Position numbers and translations under genes: made by a program. From positions 5,084,001 to 5,148,000 of the forward strand of contig CM035352.1 of the NCBI GenBank assembly GCA_020137815.1: 64,000 nt of DNA, in the 5' to 3' direction. Under the pieces are notes generated by a model that saw only the letters and a program-made list of their open reading frames with translations, did no database searches and had not been told where the DNA came from. Source of the stretch: Hormiphora californensis. Taxonomy: Eukaryota > Animalia > Ctenophora. Position 1 is the first letter of the stretch. Each line of letters opens with the position of its first letter. Positions 1 through 64,000 of this stretch are shown here, in pieces.

Positions 1-780
1 TATGACTGTCTAAAGACGAAATTCAACCAGCATTTTTGAGGGGATCACGTGTCCTCAACAAATGGGTAAAATGATTTGAAATTTACAAGAGCTTCATTGG
101 AATCGTCTAAGGTTCATCTTGATACCATGGTTTTTTTCCATAGCTCTACGTTTAAGTTGCGTTATGACTGTAGGAACATGAAGATTTTTCTATGCTGAGT
201 CTTAGTTGGTATCGGCTCACAACCCCTAATTAGGTGGCTCGGTGTCGTGTGTAATCCCATGATAATCAGCACATATCGTCTCAATTTCATCTAGACACTT
301 GACAGGGTTGTTATGACGATTTGGCAAGGCCCCTGTTAATGTGTAGGATACGCAAGTGGTCTATATCAACCCTATCATGCACTAAGATGTTATTCAAGCA
401 GCTATGAGCTTCATAACAGGGCAAAATGCAATGCGATACCTGAAACCACTTTTGGGAAAATTCCAGTTCTGACAGTCATAAGACATTCTAAACATTGAGC
501 TAGGATAAAAACCCGGGTACCAAAATGACCGCCAGACAATTTCCTACAACTCTTATGAGGGATGCAATGTGATCCAAGCAACTTTGCACTTGTGAATTTT
601 TCAAAACGTGAACCCCGGTCGGATTTCATGAACACGTAATTTTGACTTTACGACGATATATCTGACAATTGGTAAGACTTGGAAAGTCAATCTTGCAACC
701 AAAATGTTCGCCAGACAATTCTCTAGAACACTGGTTTTTGTTAGAACCATTTTGACCGATTTTTCGATCAGTTTTGGTTA

Positions 781-1711
781 ATTATTATAATGAGATCTGA
801 TCAGGATTAAATAGGGAGGAAACTAGAAAAATATCTGGCGAGGGCCGGGCTCGAACCGACAACCTCTGCATTACATGTACATTGCTCTAACCTATTGAGC
901 TACCTCGCCTACAATTTATCTACATTTCCTCTCTCTATATCACTGATCATGCCCTTAGATATTGCAGCTGTAACTCATATAGGAACAAGATAGATAGTAT
1001 CTTCACTCGCTGCATTCTCACGTTTCTCTCTTTTCTCACACAACACGCCCTACTGTACAACAGTGAAGGGGAAACATACAGCGGGCAGATCTCAGGGTGG
1101 AAGGGTCATTTGTTAATTATTATAATGAGATCTGATCAGGATTAAATAGGGAGGAAACTAGAAAAATATCTGGCGAGGGCCGGGCTCGAACCGACAACCT
1201 CTGCATTACATGTACATTGCTCTAACCTATTGAGCTACCTCGCCTACAATTTATCTACATTTCCTCTCTCTATATCACTGATCATGCCCTTAGATATTGC
1301 AGCTGTAACTCATATAGGAACAAGATAGATAGTATCTTCACTCGCTGCATTCTCACGTTTCTCTCTTTTCTCACACAACACGCCCTACTGTACAACAGTG
1401 AAGGGGAAACATACAGCGGGCAGATCTCAGGGTGGAAGGGTCATTTGTTAATTATTATAATGAGATCTGATCAGGATTAAATAGGGAGGAAACTAGAAAA
1501 ATATCTGGCGAGGGCCGGGCTCGAACCGACAACCTCTGCATTACATGTACATTGCTCTAACCTATTGAGCTACCTCGCCTACAATTTATCTACATTTCCT
1601 CTCTCTATATCACTGATCATGCCCTTAGATATTGCAGCTGTAACTGTGTGAGAAAAGAGAGAAACGTGAGAATGCAGCGAGTGAAGATACTATCTATCTT
1701 GTTCCTATATG
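781..1711 (-). mobile_element. Tandem tRNA-like retro-insertion, family A (2.6 x 335-bp units plus inverted 5' segment)
   Basis: Units start at 781, 1116 and 1451. 1645-1715 is the reverse complement of unit sequence. TSD AGTTTTGGTTA at 770-780 and 1712-1722; a single copy is present at the empty paralogous site 6699-6709. Confidence 0.9.
836..909 (-). ncRNA. tRNA-like cloverleaf (Thr-UGU-like, non-canonical A33); further copies at 1171-1244 and 1506-1579
   Basis: GGCGAGG/CCTCGCC acceptor stem, GCTC/GAGC D stem, loop CATGTAA, GTCGG-TTCGAGC-CCGGC T arm, followed by T5. Confidence 0.8.
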
Positions 1712-1887
1712 AGTTTTGGTTAGTTTAATGGAGCCCGGTCATGACCCAAAATCGCAGGTGATGCAAAGACAGTGGGACACCCTGTAGTATCCACTATCCA
1801 CTTTATTTATTGCTTATTATTCTTATAGATATGCTTATTCCCACATAGTAGTATCCACTGTAATTATTGCTTATTCCCACCACCCAG

Positions 1888-28800: not shown

Positions 28801-31800
28801 GTAACCATTACTCCGTGTTTAGAATCATGTCCCAGACAGCCAATACAACATCACCACACACTCCATACCGTGGAGACATTACAACTAATGGTTATGTCTC
28901 TTCTGTCTCGAAGCCATTCTTCCAAGGATCATACTTGGGAACGGATATGAACATTTTGTTGGCGGTTTTCTGCACCGTTATCGGCCTCCTGGCCATTTTC
29001 CTCAATGCTATTGTTGCAATCATCAAAGGACAGAAACCTCGGCATCTCTCGAACAATCTCTTCTTGATGCTGTCAACGAGTGATGGTATCACCGGGGTGT
29101 GCGCATTGTTTCATACTGCCATCTTCATAGTTTTCATGGCAATTCTACCACAGCAAAATGCGCTATTTGTCGATCCGGGTGACCCAAAGTTCGAAATTCT
29201 TTTCTATACTGTTCTGCCCCTTTTTTTTAGAATGAAGTATTTGCAATTTTGGCGATTTTGAGTTATTTATACCATCTTGATCAGGAGAAAAAGATCTACA
29301 AGATGGGCTAAGTCTCGTGTCTCAATCTTCAAAAAATAGAGTGAAGTGTTTTTTGTGAAGTACTTTTATTTTTGAAAAACTGCAGAAAAGTGAAGCAAAT
29401 GGCAATTGCTTCGCTAATATAATTCGGAAATAAATACTGCTTCGTTAAACTTTTCTACCATAGAAGTAATAACCGCAGAAAAATTTGCTTCAGTTGTTTG
29501 CTTCATTTAAAAAATTCTATTGAAATACTTCAATCAGCTGCAGATTTTGTTTGAAGTATTGTCCACTCAGAAGATACTTCACTTCATTTACTTCAATTTG
29601 AAAATGCTTCATAAATCAGTTGCAGATTTTGTTTGAAGTATTTTCAAATCAGAAGATACTTCACTTCATTTACTTCAATTTGAAAATGCTTCATAAATCT
29701 GTGGAATTCAAATGCTTCTTGTCGCATCCAGAAAAAATACTTCATAACTTAAGAATACTTCATTTTTTATTATAATATGTGCCATTTATAACACAAGTCC
29801 GGCCAAATGAAGTAATTTCCAAGATTTGTTCTTTGCTGCAGCATCATCATGATGAAGGTCGAACGGAGGCGATCCCTATAATAATTATTCTATTCTGAGT
29901 AATTATAATTATCGTTCACATCTCGAATTACTCATCCTCACCGTCACAACTACGTCACTCCAATCTCATTCTTCGAACTTAGAACCCCACATTCAAAGGT
30001 AGCATTATGTTCCAGTACCGTACTGTCGTAACGACACAACACAACCAGTTGTTAGGTAACTCAACAAGTGGAGAAGAGATGTCTGGGGGCCGGGGTGATC
30101 ATGATTCTGGGATTATCTCTATGTAAGAGTGTCACTCTGAGACAAAGAGAGAGAGACACCACAAACAGTGTTGTCAAACACTGACCTCATAAGGTTTTAT
30201 AAGTTATTGCCCTAGCGTTTGGTTTCAAATTTACATCATTCCGAAAGGCTAGGGGGCCAGCTGCAGCTGGTTTGAAAACTCAACCTGTCTGGAGTTCAAA
30301 TAGTAGCTAACGGACATCCGTGTGTATCGTATCATGCTGCAGCGGTACAATGTTTCTGTCACTCTCAGACATTTGTTGTAAAATAGTAAAAAATATAGGG
30401 TAAGCCATTTCTCCCACCACACGCAGCTGCTGCTTAGTTAGCCACCATGTACATTGAATGTATACCCGTTTCGTTTTGTCTCTCCTATTGCAATTACAAT
30501 AAACCGTTTTTATTATGATAATAATTATTGTTATCAGGACGTGATTTAAAAGCACGTTACCCTGTTTTTGATGAAACTTCGGAGCCACGAGGGTTAATTG
30601 ACTATGACTATGACTATGACTATGACTATGACTATGGTCTGTCATGGTCTGTCATGGTCTGTCATGGTCTGTCATGGTCTGTCATGCTATAGAGATATCG
30701 ATAAAGAAAGAGTAAAAAGTAAGAGAAAGAGTGAGACAAATTTGATAAAAAGATAGAGAAAAAATAGAGTTAAAAGTGACAGAGTCAAAAATACTTTTAC
30801 AAATACCGGGGACTCGAACCCGGAACCTCGAGGCTTATACGACAATGCCCTAACCACTACACCATCTCCCTTTGTCACACTTGCACCTTGTCTCCCTTTG
30901 TCACACTTGCACCTTGTCTCCCTTTGTAACCCTGTCACCTTGTCCCCCTTTGTCACCCCTGTCACCTTATCTCCAACTGTAACCCCTGTCACCTTGTCTC
31001 CCACAGTAACCCCTGTCACCTTATCTCCCTTTGTCATCCCTGTCACCCTGTCTTCCTTTGTCACCCCTGTCACCTTATCTCCCTTTGGCACACTTGCACC
31101 TTGTCTCCCATTGTAACCCCTGTCACCCTGTCTCCCTTTGTCACCCCTGTCACCTTATCTCCCTTTGTCACACTTGCACCTTGTCTCCCATTGTAACCCT
31201 GTCACCTTGTCCCCCACTGTAACCCCCGTCACCTTATCTCCAATTGTAACCCCTGTCACTTTGCCTCCCACTGTAACCCAGTCACCTTGTCATCCAATCA
31301 ATCATCCCGTCAGTGATCAGTCAGTGATCAGGTACTATCAGGAGGCAGGATAACCCGGGGAAGGGGGTGACCTAGGGAAGGAGGTGAGTTAGGAGGCAGG
31401 ATGACCTGGGGAAGGGGGGTGAGTTAGGGGTCAGGATAACCTAGGGAAGGGGGGTGAGTTAGGAGGCAGGATGATCTAGGGAAGGGGGGGGTGAGTTAGG
31501 GGTCAGGATGACCTAGGGAAGGGGGTGAGTTAGGGGTCAGGATAACCTAGGGAAGGGGGGTGAGTTAGGGGTCAGGATAACCTAGGGAAGGGAGGTGAGT
31601 TAGGGGTCAGGATAACCTGGGGAAGGGGGGTGAGTTAGGAGGCAGGATGACCTAGGGAAGGGGGTGAGTTAGGAGGCAGGATGACCTGGGGAAGGGGGGT
31701 GAGTTAGGAGGCAGGATGACCTGGGGAAGGGGGTGAGTTAGGGGTCAGGATGACCTGGGGAAGGGGGGTGAGTTAGGAGGAGGCAGGATGACCTGGGGAA

Positions 31801-34800
31801 GGGGGGTGAGTTAGGAGGCAGGATAACCTAGGGAAGGGGGGTGAGTTAGAAGGCAGGATAACCTAGGGAAGGGGGTGAGTTAGGAGGCAGGATGACCTGG
31901 GGAAGGGGGGTGAGTTAGGAGGCAGGATGACCTGGGGAAGGGGGTGAGTTAGGAGGCAGGATAACCTAGGGAAGGGGGTGAGTTAGGAGGCAGGATGACC
32001 TGGGGAAGGGGGTGAGTTAGGAGGCAGGATGACCTGGGGAAGGGGGTGAGTTAGAAGGCAGGATAACCTAGGGAAGGGAGGTGAGTTAGGAGGCAGGATG
32101 ACCTGGGGAAGGGGGTGAGTTAGGAGGCAGGATGACCTGGGGAAGGGGGTGAGTTAGGAGGCAGGATGACCTGGGGAAGGGGGTGAGTTAGGAGGCAGGA
32201 TGACCTGGGGAAGGGGGTGAGTTAGGAGGCAGGATGACCTGGGGAAGGGGGTGAGTTAGGAGGCAGGATGACCTGGGAAAGGGGGGTGAGTTAGGGGTCA
32301 GGATAACCTGGGGAAGGGGGTGAGTTAGGGGTGAGGATAACCTGGGGAAGGGGGTGAGTTAAGAGGCAGGATGACCTGGGGAAGGGGGTGAGTTAGGGGT
32401 CAGGATAACCTGGGGAAGGAGGTGAGTTAGGAGGCAGGATAACCTAGGGAAGGGGGTGAGTTAGGGGTCAGGATAACCTGGGGAAGGGGGGTGAGTTAGG
32501 AGGCAGGATGACCTAGGGAAGGGGGTGAGTAAGAAGGCAGGATAACCTAGGGAAGGGGGGTGAGTTAGGGGTCAGGATAACCTAGGGAAGGGGGTGAGTT
32601 AGGGGTCAGGATAACCTAGGGAAGGGGGGTGAGTTAGGGGTCAGGATGACCTGGGGAAGGGGGGTGAGTTAGGAGGCAGGATAACCTAGGGAAGGGGGTG
32701 AGTTAGGAGGCAGGATGACCTGGGGAAGGGGGGTGAGTTAGGGGTCAGGATAACCTAGGGAAGGGGGGTGAGTTAGGGGTCAGGATAACCTGGGGAAGGG
32801 GGGTGAGTTACGAGGCAAGATGACCTGGGGAAGGGGGTGAGTTAGGAGGCAGGATGACCTGGGGAAGGGGGTGAGTTAGGAGGCAGGATGACCTGGGGAA
32901 GGGGGGTGAGTTAGGGGTCAGGATAACCTGGGGAAGGGGGTGAGTTAGGAGGCAGGATGACCTGGGGAAGGGGGTGAGTTAGGAGGCAGGATGACCTAGG
33001 GAAGGGGGGTGAGTTAGGGGTCAGGATGACCTAGGGAAGGGGGGTGAGTTAGGAGGCAGGATGACCTGGGGAAGGGGGGTGAGTTAGGAGGCAGGATGAC
33101 CTGGGGAAGGGGGTGAGTTAGGAGGCAGGATGACCTGGGGAAGGGGGGTGAGTGAGGGCCTGTCACCTTATATCCCTTTGTCACCCCTGTCACCTTATCT
33201 CCAATTGTAACCCCTGTCACTTTGCCTCCCATTGTAACCCCTGTCACTTTGCCTCCCACTGTCTCCCATGTCACTGAACTATCACACTCACGGGAATTTG
33301 AAATGTTTGTAAAAAATTAAAGAATACGGATACAAATCATCCAAATATTAACAAAATATATTGTCATCTAACTGTTCTGTCCTTACATTCCCACACTCCT
33401 AGACAAATACTCCTCTTCGTGAATAACCCGAATGGAGACAATCTCACTCCCGTTCCCTCTCATCGATATTATCTCTCTGTCAGACCCTTTCTCTATCTCT
33501 CAGCAACCGACCGGACCAAATAAACAACCAATCCGAGCTCATTATTCAGGTCACGTGACTGGTTATCAGCCAATCGATTGTTAAAACATGTAATGAACTG
33601 GCCTGTGTGTCTGTCTGTGTGTCTGTCTGTGATCTGTTTGTATGTCTGTGATCTGTTTGTATGTCTGTCATATTTTATGAACACGGACCTGTGTAGAGGT
33701 CGGAAGAAAATTCTTGAATCTCCAATCTCCATGTTTCACTCTGATATTACAAGCCGAACTCAACCAATTTCAAAGTATGACTCGTACCGGAACAGATTAA
33801 TCTTCCAGATTTTATCTGCAGGTTCGTCTTAGTTTGAGGGTTGCCATAGCGTTTTTCTGTTTTCGCTCAATTTATCAGCACCATGATTTTAACATTCCGC
33901 CCGAAGGGCGGGCGGCCCATCTCTTTATAATGCTGCTGCAGGCTGCTGCAGGCTGCTGCAGTTGTAATTTGTGCGTCTGTTTGTCTGTGCGTCTGTTTGT
34001 CTGCAGCTGCTGCTCTGGAGTTACTTTCAAGACTAGCAAGAATTCTAACACATTTTATACTTCACTGCGTGTTAAATGAAAATTAACTTCGTTTGTGATT
34101 TTATCCAAAATATTGAAGTAAGATTGCGATTTTGAAGCACATGTACACTTTTGTTCGATTAAGTTACTTTTAGGCATTTTGAATACAGTTCTGAAGAAGT
34201 ATTTTTAGGAATGAAGTAATTACTGAAGTATATGCAAGTGAAGTACTTTTTAGGTGCTTTTGTTGCTATTATGATGAAGTATTTTTTTGAGTGAAGTAAT
34301 TACTGAAGTATCTACCACGAAAAATTATGCTTCAGTCGATATCAGTCTAGCAACGGAAGTATTTTCAAAACTGTAATATAAGTGAAGTAACCAACAGAGT
34401 AAGGCATCAATTTTGATGCCTGACATCAATTTGAGACAAATTTGATGATAGCTGATAATTGGAAGTCCTGCAGAATTCCTTCAGGATTCTTGTGGTATAA
34501 GTCATAAATCGTTTGACGTACTATTTGGGCTTCTATGACAATTTTAGTTCCGAAAAACCCTCTAAAAAACTTTAAAGTCGATTTTCTCGAAACTTAAAAA
34601 ATGCAAATACTTCATTCTAAAAAAAAGGGGCAGTGTTATGATCACATACTTCATCAGCGTCTTTTCTATTCGCATCTCGATGGCTACAAGTGTAATTTTC
34701 ATTGGCATCCGAACTGGAATTACCCTATTTCCGCTAAGGGTTAACACCGCCCGTCAGAAGTCTGTTAACATCGTTGTCGTGGTTACCTACTTGGTTACCT

Positions 34801-49800: not shown

Positions 49801-52800
49801 TTACTGTATAATAATGCGTGCTTGTTTAGTAACTCTGCTCCTAGTTGGTGCTGCCACCGCCGCCAATGTAATTTGTACTGACTACGGCAAAGATATTGCC
49901 GGTGATGATAAAATAACAGGTAATATATAGCGTCCGTTTGTTTTTGAACAAACACAGTTAATATTAATGGGGGGGGGGTGCAGCCCCAAAAAAATTCAAA
50001 CTTTTTCCGAAACCCAGGGTATGGTTGGTTTTTTTGGTCGTTTTTGGTCGTTTTGTTTTGTTGAAATTTCTTTGATTTTTTTTGGTCGTTTTTGATTTTT
50101 TTTTTTTGGTCGTTTTTGATTTTTTTGATCGTTTTGATTTTTTTGATCGTTTTTGAATTTTTTGATCGTTTTTAATTTTTTGATCGTTTTTGATTTTTTT
50201 GATTGTTTAATGTTGAACAAAAAATTTAAAAAAAATCAAAAACGATCAAATAAAATAAAAAACGATCAAAAAAATTCAAAAAAAATCAAAAACGATCAAA
50301 AAAGATCAAAAAAATCAAAAAAGATCAAAATAAATCAAAAAAAATCAAAAAAAGATAAAAAAAAATCAAAAAAAAATCAAAAAAAGATCAAAAAAAAAAA
50401 AAAAAAAATCAAAACCGACCAAAAAAAATCAACACTTTTGAAAATCCAGGGTATGGTTGGTTTTTTTTGGGCTGCACTCCCCCCCCCCTATTAATATAGT
50501 GAAATACATATCGAGAGGAAAGAAATACATATCTATTAACTACTGTCATATACCGATATTGCATCGAGTTCATACATTTGCAGTTTCATATTTGTTTCAT
50601 TTTGAATGCTCTGTTACACTGACATACACCCGTCTAAGTCTCTCTTTAATCCTAAATCTATCAATTTACAACCGCATCGCCTAGTCTGGTTCAGTCATTC
50701 TGTCAAATAGTGCTCCTTTCCTGTATCTTTCAACACAGTACCTCTAATATCTGATCTCTAACGCACTCAATACTTGCTCGTTTTCTTGTACTCAGGTCAC
50801 GTCCATAATATGCTCTGTCTCAAAACATACTCCTTGTGCCATGCTCCTCTATATCCCCTAATGATTCCAAAATTTCAAGTTTCTATTTCAAATGTGGTCT
50901 CAGTAGCATTAAAACTGTCAAATACATCATTCTGCATTCGGATACAGAATAACTTTGCGGATGTGACATAAACGAATTGCCGGGATTCTCCAGACTCTCT
51001 CACAATCAGTTCATACTTTGCAGTTTCATATTGTTTCATTTTGAATGCTCTGTTACACTGATACACCCGTCTAAGTCTCTCTTTAATCCTAAATCTATCA
51101 ATTTACAACCGCATCGCCAGTCTGGTTCAGTCATTCTGTCAAATGTGCTCCTTCCTGTATCTTTCAACACAGTACCTCTAATATCTGATCTCTAACGCAC
51201 TCAATACTTGCTCGTTTTCTTGTACTCAGGTCACGTCCATAATATTGCTCTGTCTCAAACATACTCCTTGCCAATGCTCCTCTATATCCCCTAATGATTC
51301 CCAAAATTTCAAGTTTCTATCTTCAAAACTGTGGTCTCAGTAGCATTAAAACTGTCAAATACATCATTCTGCATTCTGGATACAGAATAACTTTGCGGAT
51401 GTGTGACATAAACGAATTGCCGGGATTCTCCAGACTCTCTCACAATCAGTTTTACATTTGCAGTTTCATATTTGTTTCATTTTGAATGCTCTGTTACACT
51501 GACATACACCGTCTAACTCCTTTAATCCTAAACTATCAATTTACAACCGCATCGCCTAGTTGGTTCAGTCATTCTGTCAAATAGTGCTCTTCCTGTATCT
51601 TTCAACACAGTACCTCTAATATCTGATCTCTAACGCACTCAATACTTGCTCGTTTTCTGTACTCAGGTCACGTCCATAATATTGCTCTGTCTCAAAACAT
51701 ACTCCTTGTGCCAATGCTCCTCTATATCCCCTAATGATTCCCAAAATTTCAAGTTTCTATCTTCAAAACTGTGGTCTCAGTAGCATTAAAACTGTAAATA
51801 CATCATTCTGCATTCTGGATACAGAATAACTTGCGGATGTGTGACATAAACGATTGCCGGGATCTCCAGATCTCCTCACAATCAGTTCATACATTTGCAT
51901 TTCATATTGTTCATTTTGAATGCTCTGTTACACTGACATACACCGTCTAAGTCTCTCTTTAATCCTAAATCTATCAATTTACAACGCATGCCTAGTCTGG
52001 TTCAGTCATTCTGTCAAATAGTGCTCCTTTCCTGTATCTTTCACACAGTACCTCTATATCTGATCTCTAACGCACTCAATACCTGCTCGTTTTCTTGTAC
52101 TCAGGTCACGTCCATAATATTGCTCTGTCTCAAACATACTCCTTGTGCCATGCTCCTCTATATCCCCTAATGATTCCCAAAATTTCAAGTTTCTATCTTC
52201 AAAACTGTGGTCTCAGTAGCATTAAAACTGTCAAATACATCATTCTGCATTCTGGATACAGAATAACTTTGCGGATGTGTGACATAAACGAATTGCCGGG
52301 ATTCTCCAGACTCTCTCACAATCAGTTCATACATTTGCAGTTTCATATTTGTTTCATTTTGAATGCTCTGTTACCATGACATACACCCGTATTAGTCTCT
52401 CTTTAATCCTAAATCTATCAATTTACAACCGCTCGCCTAGTCTGGTTCAGTCATTCTGTCAAATAGTGCTCCTTCCTGTATCTTTCAACACAGTACCTCT
52501 AATATCTGATCTCTAACGCACTCAATACTGCTCGTTTTCTTGTACTCAGGTCACGTCCATAATATTGCTCTGTCTCAAAAAATACTCCTTGTGCCAATGC
52601 TCCTCTATATCCCCTAATGATTCCCAAAATTTCAAGTTTCTATCTTCAAAACTGTGGTTCAGTGCATTAAAACTGTCAAATACATCATTCTGCATTCTGG
52701 TACAGATAACTTTGCGGATGTGTGACATAAACGAATTGCCGGGATTCTCCAGACTCTCTCACAATCAGTTTATACATTTGCAGTTTCATATTTGTTTCAT

Positions 52801-55800
52801 TTTGAATGCTCTGTTACACTGACATACACCCGTCTAAGTCTCTCTTTAATCCTAAATCTATCAATTTACAACCGCATCGCCTAGTCTGGTTCAGTCATTC
52901 TGTCAAATAGTGCTCCTTTCCTGTATCTTTCAACACAGTACCTCTAATATCTGATCTCTAACGCACTCAATACCTGCTCGTTTTCTTGTACATCATTCTG
53001 CATTCTGGATACAGAATAACTTTGCGGATGTGGACATAAACGAATGCCGGGATTCTCCAGACTCTCTCACAATCAGTTATACATTTGCAGTTTCATATTT
53101 GTTTCATTTTGAATGCTCTGTTACACTGACATAACCCGTCTAAGTCTCTCTTTAATCCTAAATCTATCAATTTACAACCGCATCGCCTAGTCTGGTTCAG
53201 TCATTCTGTCAAATAGTGCTCCTTTCCTGTATCTTTCAACACAGTACCTCTAATATCTGATCTCTAACGCACTCAATACCTGCTCGTTTTCTTGTACATC
53301 ATTCTGCATTCTGGATACAGAATAACTTTGCGGATGTGTGACATAAACGAATTGCCGGGATTCTCCAGACTCTCTCACAATCAGTTCATACATTTGCAGT
53401 TTCATATTTGTTTCATTTTGAATGCTCTGTTACACGACATACACCCGTCTAAGTCTCTCTTTAATCCTAAATCTATCAATTTACAACCGCATCGCCTAGT
53501 CTGGTTCAGTATTCTGTCAAATAGTGCTCCTTTCCTGTATCTTTCAACACAGTACCTCTAATATCTGATCTCTAACGCACTCAATACCTGCTCGTTTCTT
53601 GTACATCATTCTGCATCTGGTACAGATAACTGTTCCGATGTGTGACATAAACGAATTGCCGGGATTCTCCAGACTCTTCACAACAGTTCATACATTTGCA
53701 GTTTCATATTTGTTTCATTTGAATGCTCTGTTACACTGACATACACCCGTCTAAGTCTCTCTTTAATCCTAAATCTATCAATTTACACACCGCATCGCCT
53801 AGTCTGGTTCAGTCATTCTGTCAAATAGTGCTCCTTTCCTGTATCTTTCAACACAGTACCTCTAATATCTGATCTCTAACGCACTCAATACCTGCTCGTT
53901 TTCTTGTACATCATTCTGCATTCTGGATACAGAATAACTTTGCGGATGTGTGACATAAACGAATTGCCGGGATTCTCCAGACTCTCTCACAATCAGTTCA
54001 TACATTTGCAGTTTCATATTTGTTTCATTTTGAATGCTCTGTTACACTGACATACACCCGTCTAAGTCTCTCTTTAATCCTAAACTATCAATTTACAACC
54101 GCATCGCCTAGTCTGGTTCAGTCATTCTGTCAAATAGTGCTCCTTTCCTGTATCTCTTCAAACACAGTACCTCTAATATCTGATCTCTAACGCACTCAAT
54201 ACCTGCTCGTTTCTTGTACATCATTCTGCATTCTGGATACAGAATAACTTTGCGGATTGTGACATAAACGAATTGCCGGATTCTCCAGACTCTCTCACAA
54301 TCAGTTCATACATTTGCAGTTTCATATTTGTTTCATTTTGAATGCTCTGTTACACTGACATAACCCGTCTAAGTCTCTCTTTAATCTAAATCTATCAATT
54401 TACAACCGCATCGCCTAGTCTGGTTCAGTCATTCTGTCAAATAGGCTCCTTTCCTGTATCTTTCAACACAGTACTCTTAATCTGATCTCTAACGCACTCA
54501 ATACTGCTCGTTTTCTTGTACTCAGGTCACGTCCATAATATTGCTCTGTCTCAAAACAACTCCTTGTGCCAATGCTCCTCTATATCCCTAATGATTCCCA
54601 AAATTTCAAGTTTCTATCTTCAAAACTGGGGTTCAGTAGCATTAAAACTGTCAAATACATCATTCTGCATTCTGGATACAGAATAACTTTGCGGATGTGT
54701 GACATAAACGAATTGCCGGATTCTCCAGACTCTCTCACAATCAGTTCATACATTTGCAGTTTCATATTTTTTCATTTGAATGCTCTGTTACACTGACATA
54801 CACCCGTCTAAGTCTCTCTTTAATCCTAAATCTATCAATTTACAACCGCATCGCCTAGTCTGGTTCAGTCATTCTGTCAAATAGTGCTCCTTTCCTGTAT
54901 CTTTCAACACAGTACCTCTAATATCTGATCTCTAACGCACTCAATACCTGCTCGTTTTCTTGTACATCATTCTGCATTCTGGATACAGAAAACTTGCGGA
55001 TGTGTGACATAAACGAATTGCCGGGATTCTCCAGACTCTCTCACAATCAGTTCATACATTTGCAGTTTCATATTTGTTTCTTTGAATGCTCTGTTACACT
55101 GACATACACCCTCAAGTCTCTCTTTAATCCTAAATCTATCAATTTACAACCGCATCGCCTGTTGGTTCAGTCATTCTGTCAAATAGTGCTCCTTTCCTGT
55201 ATCTTTCAACACAGTACCTCTAATATCTGATCTCTAACGCACTCAATACCTGCTCGTTTTCTTGTACATCATTCTGCATTCTGGATACAGAATAACTTTG
55301 CGGATGTGTGACATAAACGAATTGCCGGGATTCTCCAGACTCTCTCACAATCAGTTCATACATTTGCAGTTCTATTTGTTTCATTTTGAATGCTCTGTTA
55401 CACTGACATACACCCGTCTAAGTCTCTCTTTAATCCTAAATCTATCAATTTACAACCGCATCGCCTAGTCTGGTTCAGTCATTTGTCAAATAGTGCTCCT
55501 TTCCTGTATCTTTCAACACAGTACCTCTATATCTGTCTCTAAAGCATCAATACCTGCTCGTTTTCGTACATCATTCTGCATGCTGATACAGAATAACTTT
55601 GCGGATGTGTGACATAAACGAATTGCCGGGATTCTCCAGACTCTCTCACAATCAGTTCATACATTTGCAGTTTCATATTTGTTTCATTTTGAATGCTCTG
55701 TTACACTGACAACACCCGTCTAAGTCTCTCTTTAATCTAAATCTATCAATTTACAACCGCATCGCCTAGTCTGTTCAGTCATTCTGTCAAATAGTGCTCC

Positions 55801-58800
55801 TTTCCTGTATCTTTCAACACAGTACCTCTAATATCTGATCTCTAACGCACTCAATACCTGCTCGTTTTCTTGTATCTTTCAACACAGTACCTCTAATATC
55901 TGATCTCTAACGCACTCAATACCTGCTCGTTTTCTTGTACATCATTCTGCATTCTGGATACAGAATAACTTTGCGGATGTGTGACATAAACGAATTGCCG
56001 GGATTCTCCAGACTCTCTCACAATCAGTTCATACATTTGCAGTTTCATATTTGTTTCATTTTGAATGCTCTGTTACACTGACATACACCCGTCTAAGTCT
56101 CTCTTTAATCCTAAATCTATCAATTTACAACCGCATCGCCTAGTCTGGTTCAGTCATTCTGTCAAATAGTGCCCCTTTCCTGATCTTTCAACACAGTACC
56201 TCTAATATCTGATCTCTAACGCACTCAATACCTGCTCGTTTTCTTGTACTAGCCACCACCCACCCTCCACCCCACCCACCTCCCCACCCTTGCCCTTCCC
56301 AATTTAGAGGACTTTGTGAAACACGCCAGTACAGGGACAATCCTTGTGTTTTGTGCACTAAGTCGCTTATCGCGTGTAACAACTCACAATTGTTCTTATC
56401 TGTCCACCCGTCTTGTCCTATAGAACATCGTACACATTCTAGGGACGCTACAATCTGTCCCACCTCTTTTGTATTTGATCATTTTTGTTCATCTTGATCT
56501 CTACTGGAAGTGGGAATGGTACACCTCTCATCTGATCACCAACAACATCACGGTACCAATCATACATCAAAAAGCTGTAAGTTCATCTGTCTGTATTGTC
56601 TGTTCATCTATTGTGTACCATGATAATGATTCCGGAGTAAACCTTACCAATCAATAATTTAATTAGAGCTACTATAGACAGACTACCCCAGACCCAAGCT
56701 TGAGAAGTGTCCACTCGACGGACCGTCGTCGTAACAAACAAACGAACAGGCCTACCTGCACAGCCACCCAAGCCTGAAAATGTGCCCCCTAACTTGTCTT
56801 TTTGCTTATTCGCAAGATAACTGCAATGTCCTCACGGGGCGGGATGCGAAGAGTGCAACCGACCTTTAACCGTGGGGGCTGCGTAAGTGTCTTGCAAGTA
56901 CAATGACTGACTGACAATATGAATGCAATGATACAACTGACCACAACACGATGACAGACGCTATGACGAGGTTGCAAGTCGTTCTTGCCCTAACGGGCAG
57001 AGTTTGGCACGCTATAACCTATCTGTACCACCACCACCACCACCGATATTGCATCCTAGGTAAGACCGTGGTTGGACCTAGGAGTGGTCCCAATGATGAC
57101 AATACATCGGAGGCAAGATGTCCTGGAGGAACGATTGTGGGCCACTGCACAATGCGAGGTCAAGATTTCAAACGTGGTAGTGATGGCGTGACTATCGAGG
57201 ATAACGGCCGAAAGTGTGTTGCTCACGTTGGACATGGTGGTGGACATCTTCACGCTGTGGCTATATGTGTACCAGAGAACGAATATAGAGTTGTTAAAGG
57301 CCGAACAAACGGCGGGGCAAGGTGTCCTGGTGGTTTCAGACAGGTCGGGTGTATCGCACACTCAAACCATGGCACTCAGCTGGGTAAACCAGGAAAACAG
57401 TTGGGCTCCATGGAAAGATTAGGGAAGTTCGATGAACGTGGACAGCTGAAGAAGGATAGCAAGCAGCCGTGCGAGGCGAGGTGCGATGGCCCCAACTGCA
57501 TAGTGCATGCTATTTGCCGCCGAAACTAATTACGTGCCTCTATCGTTAATTTGATAAAGCAATTCTCCGATTTAATTATCTTTGTTGTCTTGGTGACATA
57601 CTAGACACATACGCGAGATCGAAGTCGCACAGCGACTGAGATCGAGCTCACACATAGCTCCGTTATTGATTTTGGAGCAAAGTTTTTTAAATCCGACTGC
57701 AACGAACTACTAAATCGATTTGCATCTGGTTTACAAAAAGCATGAAGTTGAAGACAATTTGGTAACCGTCAGGTTATATCAGAGGGCTATTATTATAATA
57801 CCATGATGAGTAGGGGCCGGGGGGGGGGGGGGCTATAATACCAATATACCATGATGGTGGATGATATCCCTGCATATCTTGAGGAAGACAGCTCGGTATC
57901 TCTCCTCAGTTGAGGTGTGTTGCAGTAATACAGACACAGAATTGAGGACGTCCCTGCACCTCCCACCCTCCTTCAGGTATTGCATTAGTAGGACTCTGAG
58001 GAGAATGGGTTTAGAGATCTGCCTTCCAGAGACAGGGTAAGTCACGTACACAATTTGGGCAAAATAACTCGTGTTTCCTTGCTTTTTGTCAGCAGGAGTA
58101 CAACACCCCAGGTATATTTACGATATATATTTGGGTTGTTTTGAGAAAAAACCATGTCCAGAACTATCGATATAATAATTAATAATGGTGAAAAGTATAA
58201 AATAGTATAAAATAGAGGCTGGGTATACTCACTGGGCAATGTCAGGTAGAGTCTCAGTATGCCTTATTGGGAGACTGGGAACCATGGTAACCAGAAGATT
58301 CAGTAGGGTGAACACGCACTCTGCCATTTGTCGCTCCTGGGCCATATCATGGCAAAATGCCACCAAGCTTTGGACCAGGTCACTCTGAATAGGGATCAGG
58401 GGTTCAGTATACAGTGTATACTATACACTCACTATACAGTCGGGCCCCGATTTACCGGAATGGTTGGGAATTTAAGCGTTTTGGCCGGTAAATCGGAGTT
58501 AATATATATGGAAGACCTGCAGTATAATAATATGTAGTACCCCTCTTCTAATCGATAGCTGGGAAATGAAATAGAGTAACAAATAGAATGAAAATGTTTG
58601 AACTTACAGCAGCAACAGGTACAGATTTGCACCAATTGAACAGAATGTTGATGATAGTTAGCCTCAACTCTACCCTTCCATCACCCGCTGACCGGGCCGG
58701 GTTGTCCGATATCTCATCCAGGGCACCCTGTATATAAAACAGGGTTAGTGGTGTCATTAGTAATGACAGGGTGATGACTCATCACTCTGAATAACAGACA

Positions 58801-61800: not shown

Positions 61801-64000
61801 CCAATCCCTCAAACACTTCAGGACGTGAGTGATGACATCTGACATCGTTGAGGCGTCAAAATAACCACTGTTTACCAATTCCTCTGCTATCTTGCATCTG
61901 AGATAGAGAGAGGGGAGAGGGAGTCAGGAGAGGAAGAGGGGAGAGCGGAAAGATATATTTAGCAGAGAGAGATTTGAATTCAGAATTCGGGAATGCTTGC
62001 CAGAGCACGATGGAGAAAGTCCAAAATGAAAATGCGCCCCTCCCCCCTCTTCTGACGATGCGCGCCCCACTCCAAACTTTTATCATAACTGTGTCATCGC
62101 GCCCTACGTCAGGTTCTGTTACCGCCAATCAAAAACTGTGACTTGATCTGCCCCACAACCCACAAAATTCCGTCTCAGATAAGAAGACGTACACCGTTCT
62201 GATGAAATTATCACACTTCACAGCTGTCACTTGTCAGTTAACTTACAATATTATTTTCTTCTGGTCGAGTGTACGGTTGTTAAGATCTTGAAAGAGGAAT
62301 GGAAATGTGGTGGAGCGCCTCTCTTTAGCAAGGGGTTGATCATCGCTAGATCGGATCGAACTAAGTTGACCATGGGCCAGGATAGCTTTGGAGCACAGGT
62401 TACAAAATATAGTAGTCGCGCTGAAATAAAAAGAAATGTTATATAGCGGTGTCTCCTTGTCTTGTTCGACCCTCCCTCCCCTAAAAAGGGCTTGAACAAA
62501 ACAAGTGTCTCCCACTCAAATTATTATAGGAATTCAACTTACAGAGATCCAAAGGGGCTTGTGTCACGCATTTCCATGTCTGAAATCAGGCCTTCATAAA
62601 CCGATCTGATCACCTAAAAAATCTGAATTTTAGGATCGGGTATTCACTCACATTACACAAAAATAAAAACTCTCGAAACTTTTCCCGCACTATGTGTGTA
62701 AGTATGAGCGGCTAGGATGTTGCCAGTTGCCCGCACTAACCTCATCTAGATGTTGACCCCTCTCATTTTCATCCAGTTGCAACCAGAGGGAGATAACGGA
62801 TCCAGCAAACTCCATAACCTCACCCTGTATAATTGGGATCAAACTGGCAACATGTGTATTGTATTTCTCTCGGGGGAATTTGTAAGGAGGCATTATACAT
62901 GATATACTGTCTCGGTATAAGAGACTTTCTGGTACAAACAAGACATATTTTTTAGATCTGCGTTATGAGTTATGTTCCAACAGGGAACATAACGACAGTG
63001 CATGATATCCAGCACCTACCTTATTTCCTGAATAATGAGTTCAGAGCAAGAATTAAATAGGGAAGAAAATCGAAAAATACTGGGTTTGACCGGGAATTGA
63101 ACCAGGGACCTCCAGAGAGACATGCCAAACCCAGTATTTTTCGATTTTCTTCCCTATTTAATTCTTGCTCTGAACTCATTATTCAGAATACTAATTAATC
63201 TCTCCTTAACCGAGTTCTGCCCGTGTATGTGTGAGATTCCCCATTAAACTGTTGTACAGAGGGCGTGTGTGTGTGTTGATCACCAGAAGGAGATATCATA
63301 ATTACTTCCCTTTATCACATGGTGTCTAGCTAAGGGCAGGAGCTTGAATATAGAGCGATGAAATGCGATCAGTACATAGGGTTTGGTAGCTTAGTGGTTT
63401 ATAGCTCCGAGCATGTCTCTCTGGAGGTCCCTGGTTCAATTCCCGGTCAAACCCAGTATTTTTCGATTTTCTTCCCTATTTAATTCTTGCTCTGAACTCA
63501 TTATTCAGAATACTAATTAATCTCTCCTTAACCGAGTTCTGCCCGTGTATGTGTGAGATTCCCCATTAAACTGTTGTACAGAGGGCGTGTGTGTGTGTTG
63601 ATCACCAGAAGGAGATATCAAAATTACTTCCCTTTATCACATGGTGTCTAGCTAAGGGCAGGAGCTTGAATATAGAGCGATGAAATGCGATCAGTACATA
63701 GGGTTTGGTAGCTTAGTGGTTTATAGCTCCGAGCATGTCTCTCTGGAGGTCCCTGGTTCAATTCCCGGTCAAACCCAGTATTTTTCGATTTTCTTCCCTA
63801 TTTAATTCTTGCTCTGAACTCATTATTCAGAATACTAATTAATCTCTCCTTAACCGAGTTCTGCCCGTGTATGTGTGAGATTCCCCATTAAACTGTTGTA
63901 CAGAGGGCGTGTGTGTGTGTTGATCACCAGAAGGAGATATCAAAATTACTTCCCTTTACCTTATTTCCCTTGTAAAGCAATGCCCGGGTAGGTTTAACGA
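13657..64000 (-). CDS. ATM: ATM serine/threonine kinase (PIKK family), multi-exon; 5' end lies beyond the window
   Basis: GT-AG exons that join in frame: 15920-16060 (GGINVPK...RQFVK), 15591-15689 (GNDDMRQD), 15163-15351 (VLPLSQVSGLIEW), 14691-14924 (VGLGDRHLANILLD..GELIHIDLG), 14416-14544 (PERVPFRLTRDMVDGLG), 14086-14209 (LEVFLHDPLYNW), 13657-13826 (FATC). Upstream exons, e.g. ~47175-47337 (LLHRWI..SSFPYSHFGY...FYR), resemble ATM N-terminal/FAT regions. Exons above ~48 kb are assigned mainly from strand, splice sites and continuity. Confidence 0.93.
13963..14071. mobile_element. ~108-bp hAT-type MITE. Other copies: ~3017-3133, ~5050-5151, 15796-15910, 25337-25444, ~33502-33575 (partial), 36413-36521, 38420-38528, 39672-41103 (split)
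   Basis: CAGGAACCGACCG...CGGTCGGTTCCTG termini; 8-bp TSDs CTAACAAG, CCTCCTTA, GTGTGCAT, GTTATACC. Confidence 0.92.
14691..14924 (-). CDS. ATM: ATM kinase catalytic exon
   Basis: DRHxxN catalytic loop and HIDLG motif; AG/GT boundaries; 234 nt in phase. Confidence 0.95.
16124..16950. mobile_element. MITE with poly-G/poly-C termini (ACATGTTAATT family)
   Basis: GGGG..GACATGTTAATT / AATTAACATGTC..CCCC; TSD AAGTAAA(G); related copy at 27146-28577. Confidence 0.85.
18890..19446 (-). CDS. ATM: ATM FAT-region exon
   Basis: Long helical ORF (ARAHLALALFADEQ) bounded by AG and GT, lying between other ATM exons. Confidence 0.75.
21027..21102. mobile_element. 76-bp element, TTGTC...GACAA, 8-bp TSD
   Basis: TSD CGAGAACT; second copy at 48823-48988 with TSD AACATGGT. 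Confidence 0.85.
22188..25239 (+). pseudogene. Apparently intronless LDL-receptor class A repeat rhodopsin-type GPCR with several frameshifts, nested antisense in an ATM intron
   Basis: Signal peptide; LDLa motifs (CDGHIDCNSGADE, DGVVDCVGGADE, CDLVDDCGDGSDE); TM segments incl. LICATDFCCWMPF and NSVINPLLY. Frame breaks may be consensus errors. Confidence 0.8.
26522..26764. mobile_element. MITE; a related right end lies at ~47550-48163
   Basis: TIR TTATGTTCTAACCCTC / GAGGGTTAGAACATAA. Confidence 0.7.
27146..28577. mobile_element. Poly-G/C-terminus MITE with nested AGCTAAAA-family MITE (27601-28211)
   Basis: Outer TSD TTTTATA; inner GGGG-TCCAGCCC...GGGCTGGA-CCCC with TSD AATTTT; host element matches 16124-16950. 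Confidence 0.88.
28827..35603 (+). CDS. Rhodopsin-class 7TM GPCR, interrupted by a transposon, nested antisense in an ATM intron
   Basis: 28827-29213 has N-glycosylation sites, TM1 and TM2 (LSTSD). 34638-35603 has TM3-7 (LNAALNPMII). Removing 29214-34637 restores the in-frame FYTV-MITYF junction. Confidence 0.85.
30598..30868 (-). mobile_element. tRNA-derived SINE with compound microsatellite tail
   Basis: A box TGGTGTAGTGG, B box GGTTCGAGTCC, pyrimidine-rich body, tail (CATGACAGAC)n(CATAGT)n. Confidence 0.7.
30866..33270. repeat. Compound minisatellite: ~27-bp CCCTGTCACCTT-type repeats flanking a ~34-bp G-rich array (31340-33153)
   Basis: About 50 copies of GGGAAGGGGGTGAGTTAGGAGGCAGGATGACCTG. 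Confidence 0.93.
35805..36040. repeat. 42-bp AT-rich tandem repeat
   Basis: About 5 copies of TCTTGTTTAGAYWTTCCAATTTTAGTGATTGATTTTAACAAT. Confidence 0.9.
36689..38077. mobile_element. Foldback MITE with TTAA TSD and GG termini (Kolobok-like)
   Basis: TTAA|GGGTACGCTAACC...GGTTAGCGTACCC|TTAA; ~600-bp inverted arms. Confidence 0.88.
39736..41065. mobile_element. Near-perfect 1.3-kb palindromic element (TAG..CTA termini, 3-bp TSD, Academ-like) inserted in a hAT MITE
   Basis: TAA|TAGGCCAGTCATATGA...TCATATGACCGGCCTA|TAA; the MITE halves rejoin across it. Confidence 0.88.
41287..41887 (-). CDS. ATM: ATM HEAT/solenoid-region exon
   Basis: 200-codon open frame with CAG acceptor and GTAAGG donor on the ATM strand. 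Confidence 0.7.
44200..44870. repeat. ~24-bp minisatellite GACAGCTGACCCCGCTCCAGTAAA
   Basis: Tandem copies visible directly. Confidence 0.92.
45525..46984. mobile_element. Foldback element with CACGG..CCGTG termini and 4-bp TSD CTCT (Chapaev/CMC-like)
   Basis: ~710-bp inverted arms with a short spacer; no ORF. Confidence 0.88.
47565..48148. mobile_element. AGCTAAAA-family MITE
   Basis: Near-identical to 27601-28211; 6-bp TSD AGGGTT; the empty target GTAAAGGGAGGGTTAGAACATAAC is seen at ~26741. Confidence 0.9.
49814..57529 (+). CDS. Two-exon secreted Cys/His-rich protein with PCSK9-CHRD/resistin-like modules, nested antisense in an ATM intron
   Basis: Exon 1 49814-49919 (MRACLVTLLLVGAATAA signal peptide, phase-1 GT) joins exon 2 57060-57529 (CCTAG acceptor) in frame: KTVVGPRSGP..SEARC..C...KCVAHVGHGGGHLHAVAIC. 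Confidence 0.8.
49969..50488. mobile_element. Poly-G/C-terminus MITE
   Basis: GGGG-TGCAGCCC...GGGCTGCA-CCCC; TSD TATTAAT; T-rich and A-rich inverted arms. Confidence 0.85.
50566..57041 (+). mobile_element. 6.5-kb retroposed insertion: satellite array plus ~790-bp unique 3' end with (CCA)n tail
   Basis: 14-bp direct repeat ACCGATATTGCATC at 50552-50565 and 57042-57055; tail CCACCACCACCACC; stem-loop TGCCC-TAAC-GGGCA just upstream of the tail. Confidence 0.75.
50570..56248. repeat. Satellite array of ~440-bp and ~309-bp units
   Basis: About 16 units; the short unit lacks the CTCAGGTCACGTCC...AAAACTGTCAAATA segment. Confidence 0.95.
59863..60849. mobile_element. Foldback element with TAGGCCAGTCA termini and 3-bp TSD ATA (related to 39736-41065)
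   Basis: ATA|TAGGCCAGTCA...TGACTGGCCTA|ATA; ~430-bp arms. Confidence 0.88.
63029..63956 (+). mobile_element. Tandem tRNA-like retro-insertion, family B (inverted 5' segment plus 2.6 x 322-bp units)
   Basis: 63029-63125 is inverted; direct units run from 63126 with period 322. TSD TACCTTATTTCC at 63017-63028 and 63957-63968. Confidence 0.9.
63379..63455 (+). ncRNA. tRNA-like cloverleaf; second copy at 63701-63777
   Basis: GGGTTTGG/TCAAACCC acceptor stem, A box TAGCTTAGTGG, loop CATGTCT, B box GGTTCAATTCC, followed by T5. Confidence 0.75.

Follow-up and report, generated by a model that had tools for sequence, protein, structure and literature searches.

Tandem non-coding units bearing a tRNA-like module in a ctenophore genome, probably copied by Penelope-like target-primed reverse transcription

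No major retroelement mechanism is less well understood than Penelope-like retrotransposition. Insertions of Penelope-like elements (PLEs) are typically partial tandems accompanied by an inverted, 5'-truncated copy, with a tail on just one side; some PLE clades have no HHR, and non-autonomous derivatives present in many copies have also been described (PMC8557442). The PLE protein nicks and extends both strands, reverse transcription starts internally at two sites, and the intervening stretch forms the tail; a multimeric transcript serves as the template, and the hammerhead is dispensable (PMC11167929). The tandem and inverted products and the one-sided tail were linked to two internal RT starts only in 2024, for one lizard element and in vitro.

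Here we describe family B, together with its relative, family A, from a 64-kb stretch of the Hormiphora californensis genome (the window) and from copies elsewhere in that genome. By analogy with the systems above, family B is probably a non-coding, non-autonomous retroelement copied by Penelope-like target-primed reverse transcription, for which we infer an RNA intermediate, a PLE motor and the form of the template. What is new here is that the 3' ends are not free, nearly all of those in TSD-verified insertions falling at two sites, End1 and End2.

Anatomy and copies of families A and B

The preliminary description of this DNA had placed an insertion at 63017-63968, composed of a 12-bp TSD, a 97-bp inverted piece and about 2.6 near-identical 322-bp units. 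Direct reading and a TSD search confirm that the insertion is real, and reading, TRF and BLAST bear out its build. The window copies are made up as follows, with unit positions prefixed t:

63017-63028, unstranded: left TSD copy, 12 bp, TACCTTATTTCC (direct reading, TSD search)
63029-63125, minus strand: short inverted arm, 97 nt, the reverse complement of unit t129..t32; outer end at the End2 hot spot, after CTCATTATTCA (BLAST to unit 100%, junction read)
63126-63956, plus strand: long direct arm, 2.58 head-to-tail 322-bp units (t69..322, 1..322, 1..255); outer end at the End1 hot spot, after ACTTCC and before CTT
63626-63636, plus strand: internal copy of the End1 site (ACTTCC, then CTTTA); the same site terminates the insertion at 63948-63956
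63957-63968, unstranded: right TSD copy, TACCTTATTTCC (direct reading, TSD search)
770-1722, minus strand: family A insertion of the same build with the mirror choice of ends, TSD AGTTTTGGTTA

TRF reports a period of 322, 2.6 copies and 99% for the direct arm, and a single base (A242T, in the innermost unit) differs among the units of this copy. Its 3' end reads ...ACTTCCCTT(TA), the TA being common to the element end and the TSD.

A search of the genome returned 201 B-type and 101 A-type matches, which we grouped into at least ~35 B loci and at least ~50 A loci. TSDs are 10-14 bp long with a mode of 12 (20 sequenced insertions), and the insertion junctions show 1-4 nt of microhomology and sometimes extra bases. 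Copies are 96-100% identical, and there are subfamilies, B' (about 89%) and A' (about 85%). Each arm holds 0.4 to 24 units as head-to-tail partial tandems at about 32 sequenced loci, and the junctions between units are exact at 322 bp in arrays of up to 24 units. One insertion (L069/L070) is assembled identically on chromosome C7 and on a 25.7-kb contig, C15, which we regard as its haplotig. The match counts, TSDs, identities, subfamilies and L069/L070 together uphold the earlier view of a real, diversified and recently mobile group. For annotation purposes, such arrays should be called neither tRNA genes nor plain satellites.

Families A and B are 63% identical globally. When their similarity was checked against shuffled controls, as had been proposed, the alignment of the non-tRNA part scored 119 vs -43 +/- 13.5 for 300 dinucleotide shuffles, far above them (z = 12). 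On this alignment the two families are homologous, with B as a sister family of A. The preliminary description also gave B a "different permutation", its 3' end falling at another unit position from that of A. This is literally true against the window A copy, in which the long arm stops at End2 (..CTCATTATAATAAT) and the short inverted arm at End1 (..CTTGTTCCTATATG), but it is misleading, as the two end positions are homologous and common to both families. Because the choice of End1 or End2 on the long arm is mirrored between the two window copies, the different permutation amounts to a mirror choice.

Outer ends and RNA fold of the unit

The outer ends of these insertions are fixed at two spots. 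End2 follows CTCATTATTC, while End1 follows ACTTCC in B and CTTGTTCC in A. With hot-spot windows set after inspection of the data (B, t127-136 and t251-257; A, t120-136 and t262-273; at most 9% of the unit), and in a ~32-locus sample biased to long, young copies, 32 of 34 outer ends of TSD-verified insertions lie at End1 or End2. In the A/B alignment the windows of one family are homologous to those of the other. Of the two-arm insertions that are TSD-verified and have each outer end at a hot spot, all 12 combine an End1 with an End2, and a further 8 two-arm insertions do so by search coordinates, with 1 exception. Two arms are present in 18 of the 31 sequenced insertions, and all 18 run in (-) then (+) order with 3' ends outward. 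The two termini differ in sequence (End1 vs End2), and the stretch of 125-137 nt separating End1 and End2 is present at one end only, as a "tail". Of 12 single-arm 5' ends, 4 lie no more than 4 nt from the tRNA-like module's 3' edge, and some 12 short copies of A span the tRNA 5' end to End2.

It had been suggested that non-fixed 3' ends fit a circular template. We find instead that the ends are fixed at two hot spots common to A and B and used as complementary pairs. Since fixed End1 and End2 positions are as in Penelope-type retroelements, the ends alone give no pointer to circular RNA. Ends of this kind match the published hallmark of Penelope-like retrotransposition, in which initiation occurs internally on linear multimeric RNA.

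The structured part of the unit, in the window copy of B, comprises:

63345-63363, plus strand: 5' strand of a long stem enclosing the tRNA-like module (TATAGAG..GAAATG motif; RNAalifold, pair counts for helices 3 and 4, MFE folds)
63379-63455, plus strand: tRNA-like module (second copy 63701-63777), with A box TAGCTTAGTGG and B box GGTTCAATTCC intact, a long, aberrant anticodon arm, and T5 four nt past the 3' end (after AGTA)
63465-63486, plus strand: 3' strand of the long stem (TCCCTATTTAAT motif; RNAalifold, pair counts)
63494-63539, plus strand: hairpin GAACTC / 34-nt loop / GAGTTC (helix 8, one compensatory pair; copies in other units at 63172-63217 and 63816-63861)

The tRNA-like modules in B score 34.4 bits against the Rfam tRNA model (cut-off 29) and are also found by ARAGORN; the family A module scores 56.5 bits. 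We rejected a genuine tRNA gene array, as in B a 14-nt stretch, skipped by the model, stands in place of the anticodon arm, and the score only just clears the cut-off. Every unit also carries ~65 conserved nt upstream of the tRNA-like part, which pair with downstream sequence, and the End2 start site (about 63506-63513) sits in the 5' part of the GAACTC/GAGTTC hairpin loop.

Over 58 consensus pairs in B, B', A and A', 95% of cells pair, vs 36-49% with the partners slid. Compensatory changes occur at 13 pairs (5 of them in the tRNA acceptor stem) vs 1-2 with the partners slid. The sense-strand RNA is under selection. Fold energy is no better than that of shuffles (B, z = 0.1; A, z = -2.1), so that the evidence for structure comes from covariation and not from energy. 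An Rfam search with E up to 10 found no ribozyme on either strand of the A or B arrays, only tRNA matches, and the whole window at the Rfam gathering score likewise gave tRNA matches only, with no hammerhead or other ribozyme. We infer, and favour, a role for the tRNA-like module as a signal for processing or recognition; it may instead act as a Pol III promoter. T5 and T4 runs come right after the module, so that Pol III should stop before End2, which counts against our preferred explanation with respect to the source of its template RNA.

Proposed mechanism and rival explanations

In the mechanism that we consider probable, each 322-nt unit encodes a structured RNA in which a tRNA-like cloverleaf sits on a long stem and further helices are present. 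The target would be nicked on both strands, 10-14 bp apart, and each 3'-OH would prime cDNA internally on an RNA that is multi-unit or reiterated, with End1 used at one nick and End2 at the other. The product would have two arms with 3' ends outward and a variable inner joint, the 125-nt inter-start stretch being present at one end only, and a single priming nick would yield a single arm with a variable 5' end. The window B copy, with its short End2 arm and long End1 arm, would be one such event, and the window A copy the mirror event.

A GIY-YIG search of the genome gave 66 PLE matches, and neighbouring opposite-strand GIY-YIG matches of this same genome stand in (-) then (+) order in 13 of 13 cases. 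Among the A and B matches listed, none is near any of the 66, part of the candidates having been scored. We rejected an RT ORF within the B array of L061 as the partner, as it belongs to a nested LINE with an (ATT)n tail, the 3' UTR of which shares only chance 10-15-mers with A and B. No partner RT came out of these searches, which counts against the proposed mechanism. This LINE is a member of a family of >1600 candidate RT copies. Its subfamily has three copies less than 3 kb away from copies of A or B, which we take to reflect a common AT-rich target preference.

The arrays themselves bear on the template. A private T245C is found in 21 of 22 units of L062 and a private T161A plus C251del in 20 of 20 units of L064, and array-private variants likewise occur in the units of both arms in L071, L075 and L060. 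Since private variants are found in all units and in both arms, the multiplication of one monomer genotype took place at insertion or later. The template may have been a monomer, circular or reiterated in some other way, the one observation in favour of this being these array-private variants. In L002 and L062, the innermost unit deviates from the rest. Contigs of marine metatranscriptomes from four studies contain B pieces with End1 and End2 borders, and contig X1 also holds an inverted joint; these contigs show only copies embedded in other transcripts, with no starts, ends or crossing of a unit border. A pattern scan of metagenome contigs for relatives returned 12 chance matches with no further similarity.

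If a unit-length circular RNA were copied by rolling-circle reverse transcription, its endless template would give rise to multi-unit insertions and mid-unit ends. The variants shared by every unit and both arms in the five arrays above (L062, L064, L071, L075 and L060) would fit this, as would exact 322-bp junctions over up to 24 units, and animal hammerhead retrozymes do form circles (PMC7229834). The ends are fixed, however, and internal initiation on linear multimers accounts for them (PMC11167929). That 5' ends recur at the edges of the tRNA suggests linear RNAs, the deviating innermost units of L002 and L062 speak against an endless template, no metatranscriptome contig crosses the unit border, and later unequal exchange could homogenise units too. 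A ribozyme to make ligatable ends is lacking, and the products of RNase P and RNase Z are not known to serve as RtcB substrates. We regard rolling-circle copying as possible but doubtful. A more elaborate reading, which we put forward as a speculation and think unlikely, would make the family a ribozyme-free retrozyme counterpart and the first tRNA-bearing element on Penelope-type enzymes. The cloverleaf would recruit RNase P and RNase Z to cut multimers in place of the hammerhead, and a dimeric PLE enzyme would begin cDNA synthesis in two hairpin loops of a unit-length, possibly circular RNA, with a separate loop for each target strand, which would explain the single genotype per array.

An ordinary tRNA-derived SINE moved by a LINE could owe its flipped arm to twin priming and its tandem units to template jumping, and would account for the tRNA head with intact A and B boxes, for the roughly 12 short A copies running from the tRNA 5' end to End2, and for the setting, in which LINEs are very abundant (>1600 candidate RT copies) and one lies inside the L061 B array. 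Yet the elements end in ...ACTTCC or ...CTCATTATTC with no A-rich or microsatellite tail, and the 3' UTR and (ATT)n tail of that LINE are unrelated to A and B beyond the chance 10-15-mers. More than half of the insertions have two arms, and the L1 twin-priming rate is far below this share. Strict End1/End2 pairing is no LINE trait, and the units hold 65 nt upstream of the tRNA that a Pol III SINE transcript would lack; LINE-driven mobility is quite improbable. More improbable still is an origin at the DNA level, through a foldback-type transposon, reintegrated extrachromosomal circles or a local satellite spread by recombination. Inverted arms of tandem repeats do resemble foldback elements, and unequal exchange can grow tandem arrays, but the outer ends differ and form no terminal inverted repeats, the 5' truncation points vary, the junctions carry microhomology and extra bases, and compensatory changes keep the RNA fold on one strand. 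A foldback-type DNA transposon in particular was rejected on the unlike termini (End1 vs End2) and on a TSD length that is not fixed (10-14 bp). That the tandem units are an assembler artefact is scarcely credible: the same build recurs at dozens of loci with a separate TSD at each, C7 and its presumed haplotig C15 carry one insertion in identical assembly (L069/L070), and contigs from four independent metatranscriptome studies carry B pieces with End1/End2 borders, one of them (X1) with the inverted joint.

Significance and comparison with known systems

Under the Penelope-like reading, ctenophore families A and B would offer a small, young, high-copy natural read-out of the process, with start sites that are far apart (125-137 nt) and easily told apart. 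The strict complementary pairing on the two target strands hints at different jobs for the halves of the enzyme complex. If the reading is true, the Penelope type joins LINE-dependent SINEs and LTR-type TRIMs among the retroelement classes that have captured a tRNA-like module, and multimer insertion needs no hammerhead. Our literature search found no report of a tRNA-bearing PLE-type element, nor of ctenophore SINEs.

A and B share head-to-tail partial tandems and a presumed multi-unit template with PLEs and their derivatives, namely animal non-LTR retrozymes and the Chlamys-derived MRC1 (PMC8557442; PMC11167929; PMC7229834; bioRxiv 10.64898/2026.07.22.740005). Further likenesses to PLEs are the adjoining inverted 5'-truncated copy with 3' ends outward, the extension at one end only, the two internal RT start sites and the variable TSDs; the GIY-YIG PLEs of the same genome resemble A and B in their (-)(+) order and tandem layout. 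In contrast to PLEs, A and B lack both a hammerhead and any other known ribozyme, each unit bears a tRNA-like cloverleaf on a long stem, and the tail measures 125-137 nt vs 30-40 bp. A and B also pair their start sites strictly between arms, whereas the PLE sites were used alike on both strands in vitro and strict pairing is unpublished, and an autonomous PLE with a sequence link to A or B has not been found so far.

With tRNA-derived SINEs, A and B share a tRNA-related module with A and B boxes, short non-coding units, and some copies that start at the tRNA 5' end. They differ in having no LINE-type tail, in the T5 just past the tRNA-like part, in units that include sequence upstream of the tRNA, and in multi-unit, two-arm insertions being the rule. 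The SMalpha/Sjalpha elements of schistosomes reportedly carry Pol III promoter boxes, as noted by Ferbeyre et al. in 1998. These SINE-like retroposons resemble A and B in their tandem or dispersed ~335-bp units (PMC8490949), but have an active type I hammerhead, which A and B do not. Helenus, Ajax and Cassandra, TRIMs with tRNA- or 5S-derived sequence in their LTRs, are LTR elements with PBS, PPT and 4-5-bp TSDs, whereas A and B have no LTR, PBS or PPT and TSDs of 10-14 bp; the likeness is that a small-RNA-gene module has been captured by a non-autonomous, LINE-independent retroelement (PMC10886601).

The family B copy and its relatives in the genome

The preliminary description of the family B element at 63017-63968 matches the sequence exactly as we read it. 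The copy is a two-arm insertion, an arm being a run of units in one orientation, and it lies between the two copies of a target-site duplication (TSD).

Features of the family B copy
63017-63028 and 63957-63968: TSD, 12-bp direct repeat TACCTTATTTCC, bracketing 928 bp
63029-63125: inverted arm, 97 nt, perfect reverse complement of part of the repeat unit
63126-63956: direct arm, 2.58 head-to-tail units of 322 bp
63379-63455 and 63701-63777: tRNA-like modules, one per unit (Rfam tRNA, 34.4 bits, narrowly above threshold)

TRF reports a period of 322, 2.6 copies and 99% for this array, and a single base is the sole difference among its three units. The tRNA-like module passes only narrowly because a longer stretch replaces the anticodon arm. 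Searching both strands against Rfam up to E = 10 returned no self-cleaving ribozyme and no family besides tRNA. Unit positions (t) are numbered from t1 = 63380, base 2 of the cloverleaf.

The family A array at 770-1722 is built in the same way on the minus strand. Aligned from the tRNA start, the A unit (335 bp) and the B unit (322 bp) are 63% identical. With the tRNA part removed, the alignment scores 119, against -43 +/- 13.5 for 300 dinucleotide-preserving shuffles (z = 12). Because this is far above the shuffles, the two are homologous, as had been proposed, and B is the sister family of A.

A search of the genome (110.7 Mb, 45 contigs; the window is C3:5084001-5148000) found at least 201 B-type matches (345 candidates) and 101 A-type matches, which we grouped into at least ~35 B-type and at least ~50 A-type loci. 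They form four subfamilies: B (96-100% to the window unit), B' (88-91%), A, and A' (84-86%). Approximately 32 loci were read in sequence. Clean TSDs of 10-14 bp (mode 12) flank 20 sequenced insertions, and junctions show 1-4 nt of microhomology, at times with a few additional bases. Two arms are present in 18 of 31 insertions, in every case ordered (-) then (+), so that the sense 3' ends face outward. Arms are 0.3 to 16 units long, and each insertion has its inner joint at a unit position of its own.

One insertion was assembled twice in identical form, on C7 and on C15, a contig of 25.7 kb that we take as a haplotig of C7. B pieces with matching borders occur in contigs from four independent marine metatranscriptome studies, and one of these contigs also contains an inverted joint. 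Assembly stutter is therefore ruled out for practical purposes. The TSDs, the many loci and the four subfamilies bear out the earlier view of a real and recently active element.

Other repeats were seen alongside. The window holds a large compound tandem array at 50567-55874 (periods 437, 308 and 302 bp; 94-96% identity; strong negative GC skew, ~35-39% GC) that is unrelated to A and B. It also holds a 34-bp minisatellite at 31368-33157 (~52 copies, 91% identity), bordered on both sides by 27-bp repeat arrays (30865-31291, 33159-33275). Within a B unit at L062:2186-2947 (locus coordinates; C1:6446185-6446946) lies a 762-bp element bounded by inverted repeats of ~33 bp (GCGCACAGACTGTTCATGCGTGATCATGTCCAT...) and flanked by a TSD of 8 bp (GCCCTTAG), probably a MITE of a cut-and-paste transposon. 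A 500-aa open frame at L041:1729-3228 (C11:2920624-2922123) begins exactly at the border of an A insertion, at the end site designated End2 below. It has no Pfam match, and could be a host exon or an unknown element.

Outer ends of the arms

The preliminary description had called the 3' ends non-fixed. We found instead that 32 of the 34 outer ends of TSD-verified insertions fall inside two narrow windows, End1 and End2.

End sites in unit coordinates
End2, family B: t127-136, directly after CTCATTATTC(AGA)
End2, family A: t120-136, directly after CTCATTAT(AATAAT)
End1, family B: t251-257, directly after ATTACTTCC
End1, family A: t262-273, directly after CTTGTTCC

Together these windows make up at most 9% of the unit, so the clustering is far beyond chance, and in the A/B alignment the windows of the two families fall in homologous columns. 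Among TSD-verified two-arm insertions, 12 have both ends at hot spots, and every one of them has End1 on one arm and End2 on the other. About half would be mixed under independent choice, which gives 12 of 12 a probability of ~1e-4. Coordinates alone indicate mixed pairs at eight more A loci. The lone exception found is a 13-unit A' array (C7:838922-843347) with End2 at either end, for which no TSD was found. Insertions with a single arm stop at one site or the other, and do so at End2 about twice as often as at End1. Of the two copies in the window, B has its short arm ending at End2 and its long arm at End1; A has the reverse, with End1 on the short arm and End2 on the long one. The "different permutation" noted for them is thus correct as to their ends, which do differ, but these are mirror outcomes of one pairing rule rather than separate rules.

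Two B arms (left borders at L061:1155 and L068:1235) stop at t86, just beyond a T5 run (..CCAGTATTTTTCG); no TSD was found for either, and these borders may mark a rare third end site or later truncations of both. Two single units of a 19-unit array (L064:2608-2924 and L064:5949-6269) have lost 5 nt exactly at End1 (t247-251) and 1 nt at End2 (t133). These losses may be marks left by re-initiation, or by a jump between templates, at the start sites, or may be coincidence.

Fold of the unit and template of the insertions

We derived a consensus fold of 58 pairs from an alignment of B, B', A and A' units, each opened just past End1. Pairing is possible in 95% of its cells, against 36-49% with partners slid by 1-3 columns, and compensatory changes are seen in 13 pairs, where the slid controls have 1-2. 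With four sequences, and a structure derived from the same four, this is supportive rather than conclusive of selection on the RNA fold. The "ordered motifs" recognized earlier as common to A and B turn out to be its helix strands: TATAGAG..GAAATG pairs with TTTC..TCCCTATTTAAT in a long stem around the cloverleaf, CTAAGGGCA pairs with TCTGCCCG, and CTGTTGTACAG forms a hairpin. Within the tRNA-like module, covariation is seen at five pairs of the acceptor stem; therefore the tRNA-like fold is kept, beyond mere promoter boxes. In the consensus fold End2 lies in the large loop of a conserved GAWCTC/GAGWTC hairpin, and the loop holding End1 exists in a multimer, where it is closed by CACCA/TGGTG across the unit border. 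Folding energy is unremarkable (z = 0.1 for B, -2.1 for A).

Array-private variants occur in every unit and in both arms: T245C in 21 of 22 units at L062, T161A with a 1-nt deletion in 20 of 20 at L064, and variants similarly spread through the units at L071, L075 and L060. Apart from these variants, units differ by rare singletons. One monomer genotype has therefore been multiplied in each insertion, possibly by repeated copying of a circular monomer, by jumps between identical monomer RNAs, from a homogeneous source array, or by later unequal exchange. A circular RNA template had been proposed as fitting non-fixed ends. That argument fails because the ends are fixed. A reiterated monomer may nevertheless have been the template, and the single-genotype arrays are the sole observation in favour of a circle. 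Several 5' ends weigh against a simple circle. Of 12 single-arm 5' ends, four are no more than 4 nt from the cloverleaf 3' edge (t75-81), one of them heading a 7.5-unit copy; the direct arm begins at cloverleaf base 1, at the inner joint, in B insertion L073 and in metatranscriptome contig X6; and ~12 short A copies span the tRNA 5' end to End2. Such ends may reflect linear RNAs set at RNase P/RNase Z sites, or reverse transcriptase stops at the cloverleaf. T5 and T4 runs within ~15 nt downstream of the tRNA-like module should halt Pol III ahead of End2, and templates are therefore more likely to be read-through or Pol II transcripts. In contigs from oligo-dT and other marine metatranscriptomes, copies are embedded in longer transcripts, and none of the marine metatranscriptome contigs crosses a unit border.

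Proposed mechanism and comparison with Penelope-like elements

The best explanation for the architecture of A and B is target-primed reverse transcription of the Penelope type, acting on both strands and starting at two fixed internal sites. Both target strands would prime reverse transcription, at End1 on one and at End2 on the other. A SINE driven by a LINE would account for the insertions less well, and is unlikely: A and B lack a tail repeat, their units hold sequence upstream of the tRNA, and the End1/End2 pairing rule is foreign to LINEs. They also show no similarity to the tail of a LINE that is inserted in a B array. This LINE (L061:1466-2928; C1:6216965-6218427, minus) is 5'-truncated, with t98-101 duplicated at its borders; it has an (ATT)n tail and a 412-aa open frame containing RVT_1. 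The genome holds more than 1600 candidate copies of its family (ORFs ~1000-1100 aa), and among the 12 closest, 3 are no more than 3 kb away from an A or B element. DNA-level models fail because the two termini differ, TSD length varies and the covariation is specific to one strand.

The insertion layout matches the published signature of Penelope-like elements (PLEs). The purified lizard PLE protein (Frangieh et al.) nicks and extends both target strands; two internal RNA sites start reverse transcription without homology to the target, and the RNA stretch separating them is the tail; a multi-copy transcript is the likely template, and the hammerhead is dispensable (PMC11167929). There, too, the start lies within a stem-loop, like End1 and End2. 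PLE clades without a hammerhead ribozyme exist, and non-autonomous derivatives give multicopy head-to-tail insertions (PMC8557442); animal hammerhead "retrozymes" are now seen as such derivatives (PMC7229834; bioRxiv 10.64898/2026.07.22.740005). The genome contains at least 66 GIY-YIG endonuclease matches. All 13 neighbouring opposite-strand pairs among them are ordered (-) then (+), often followed by tandem copies ~3.2 kb apart, which is the layout of A and B. Among the A/B matches listed none is near a GIY-YIG match, nor was a sequence link to an autonomous PLE found. One B copy (L063:1100-1870; C1:411899-412669) sits within a minisatellite, (AAGTGAAGTGAAAACAA)n, which brings to mind reports that some PLE clades insert preferentially into microsatellites.

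When metagenome contigs were scanned by pattern for relatives, chance matches alone came up, and we found no description in the literature of a tRNA-bearing PLE-type element or of ctenophore SINEs. The nearest analogues are SMalpha of schistosomes, a SINE-like element that bears a hammerhead (PMC8490949), and Helenus, tRNA-bearing TRIMs of LTR type (PMC10886601). Unlike known PLE-type elements, A and B have no ribozyme, carry a tRNA-like cloverleaf in each unit, have start sites 125-137 nt apart, and strictly alternate End1 and End2 between the two strands.
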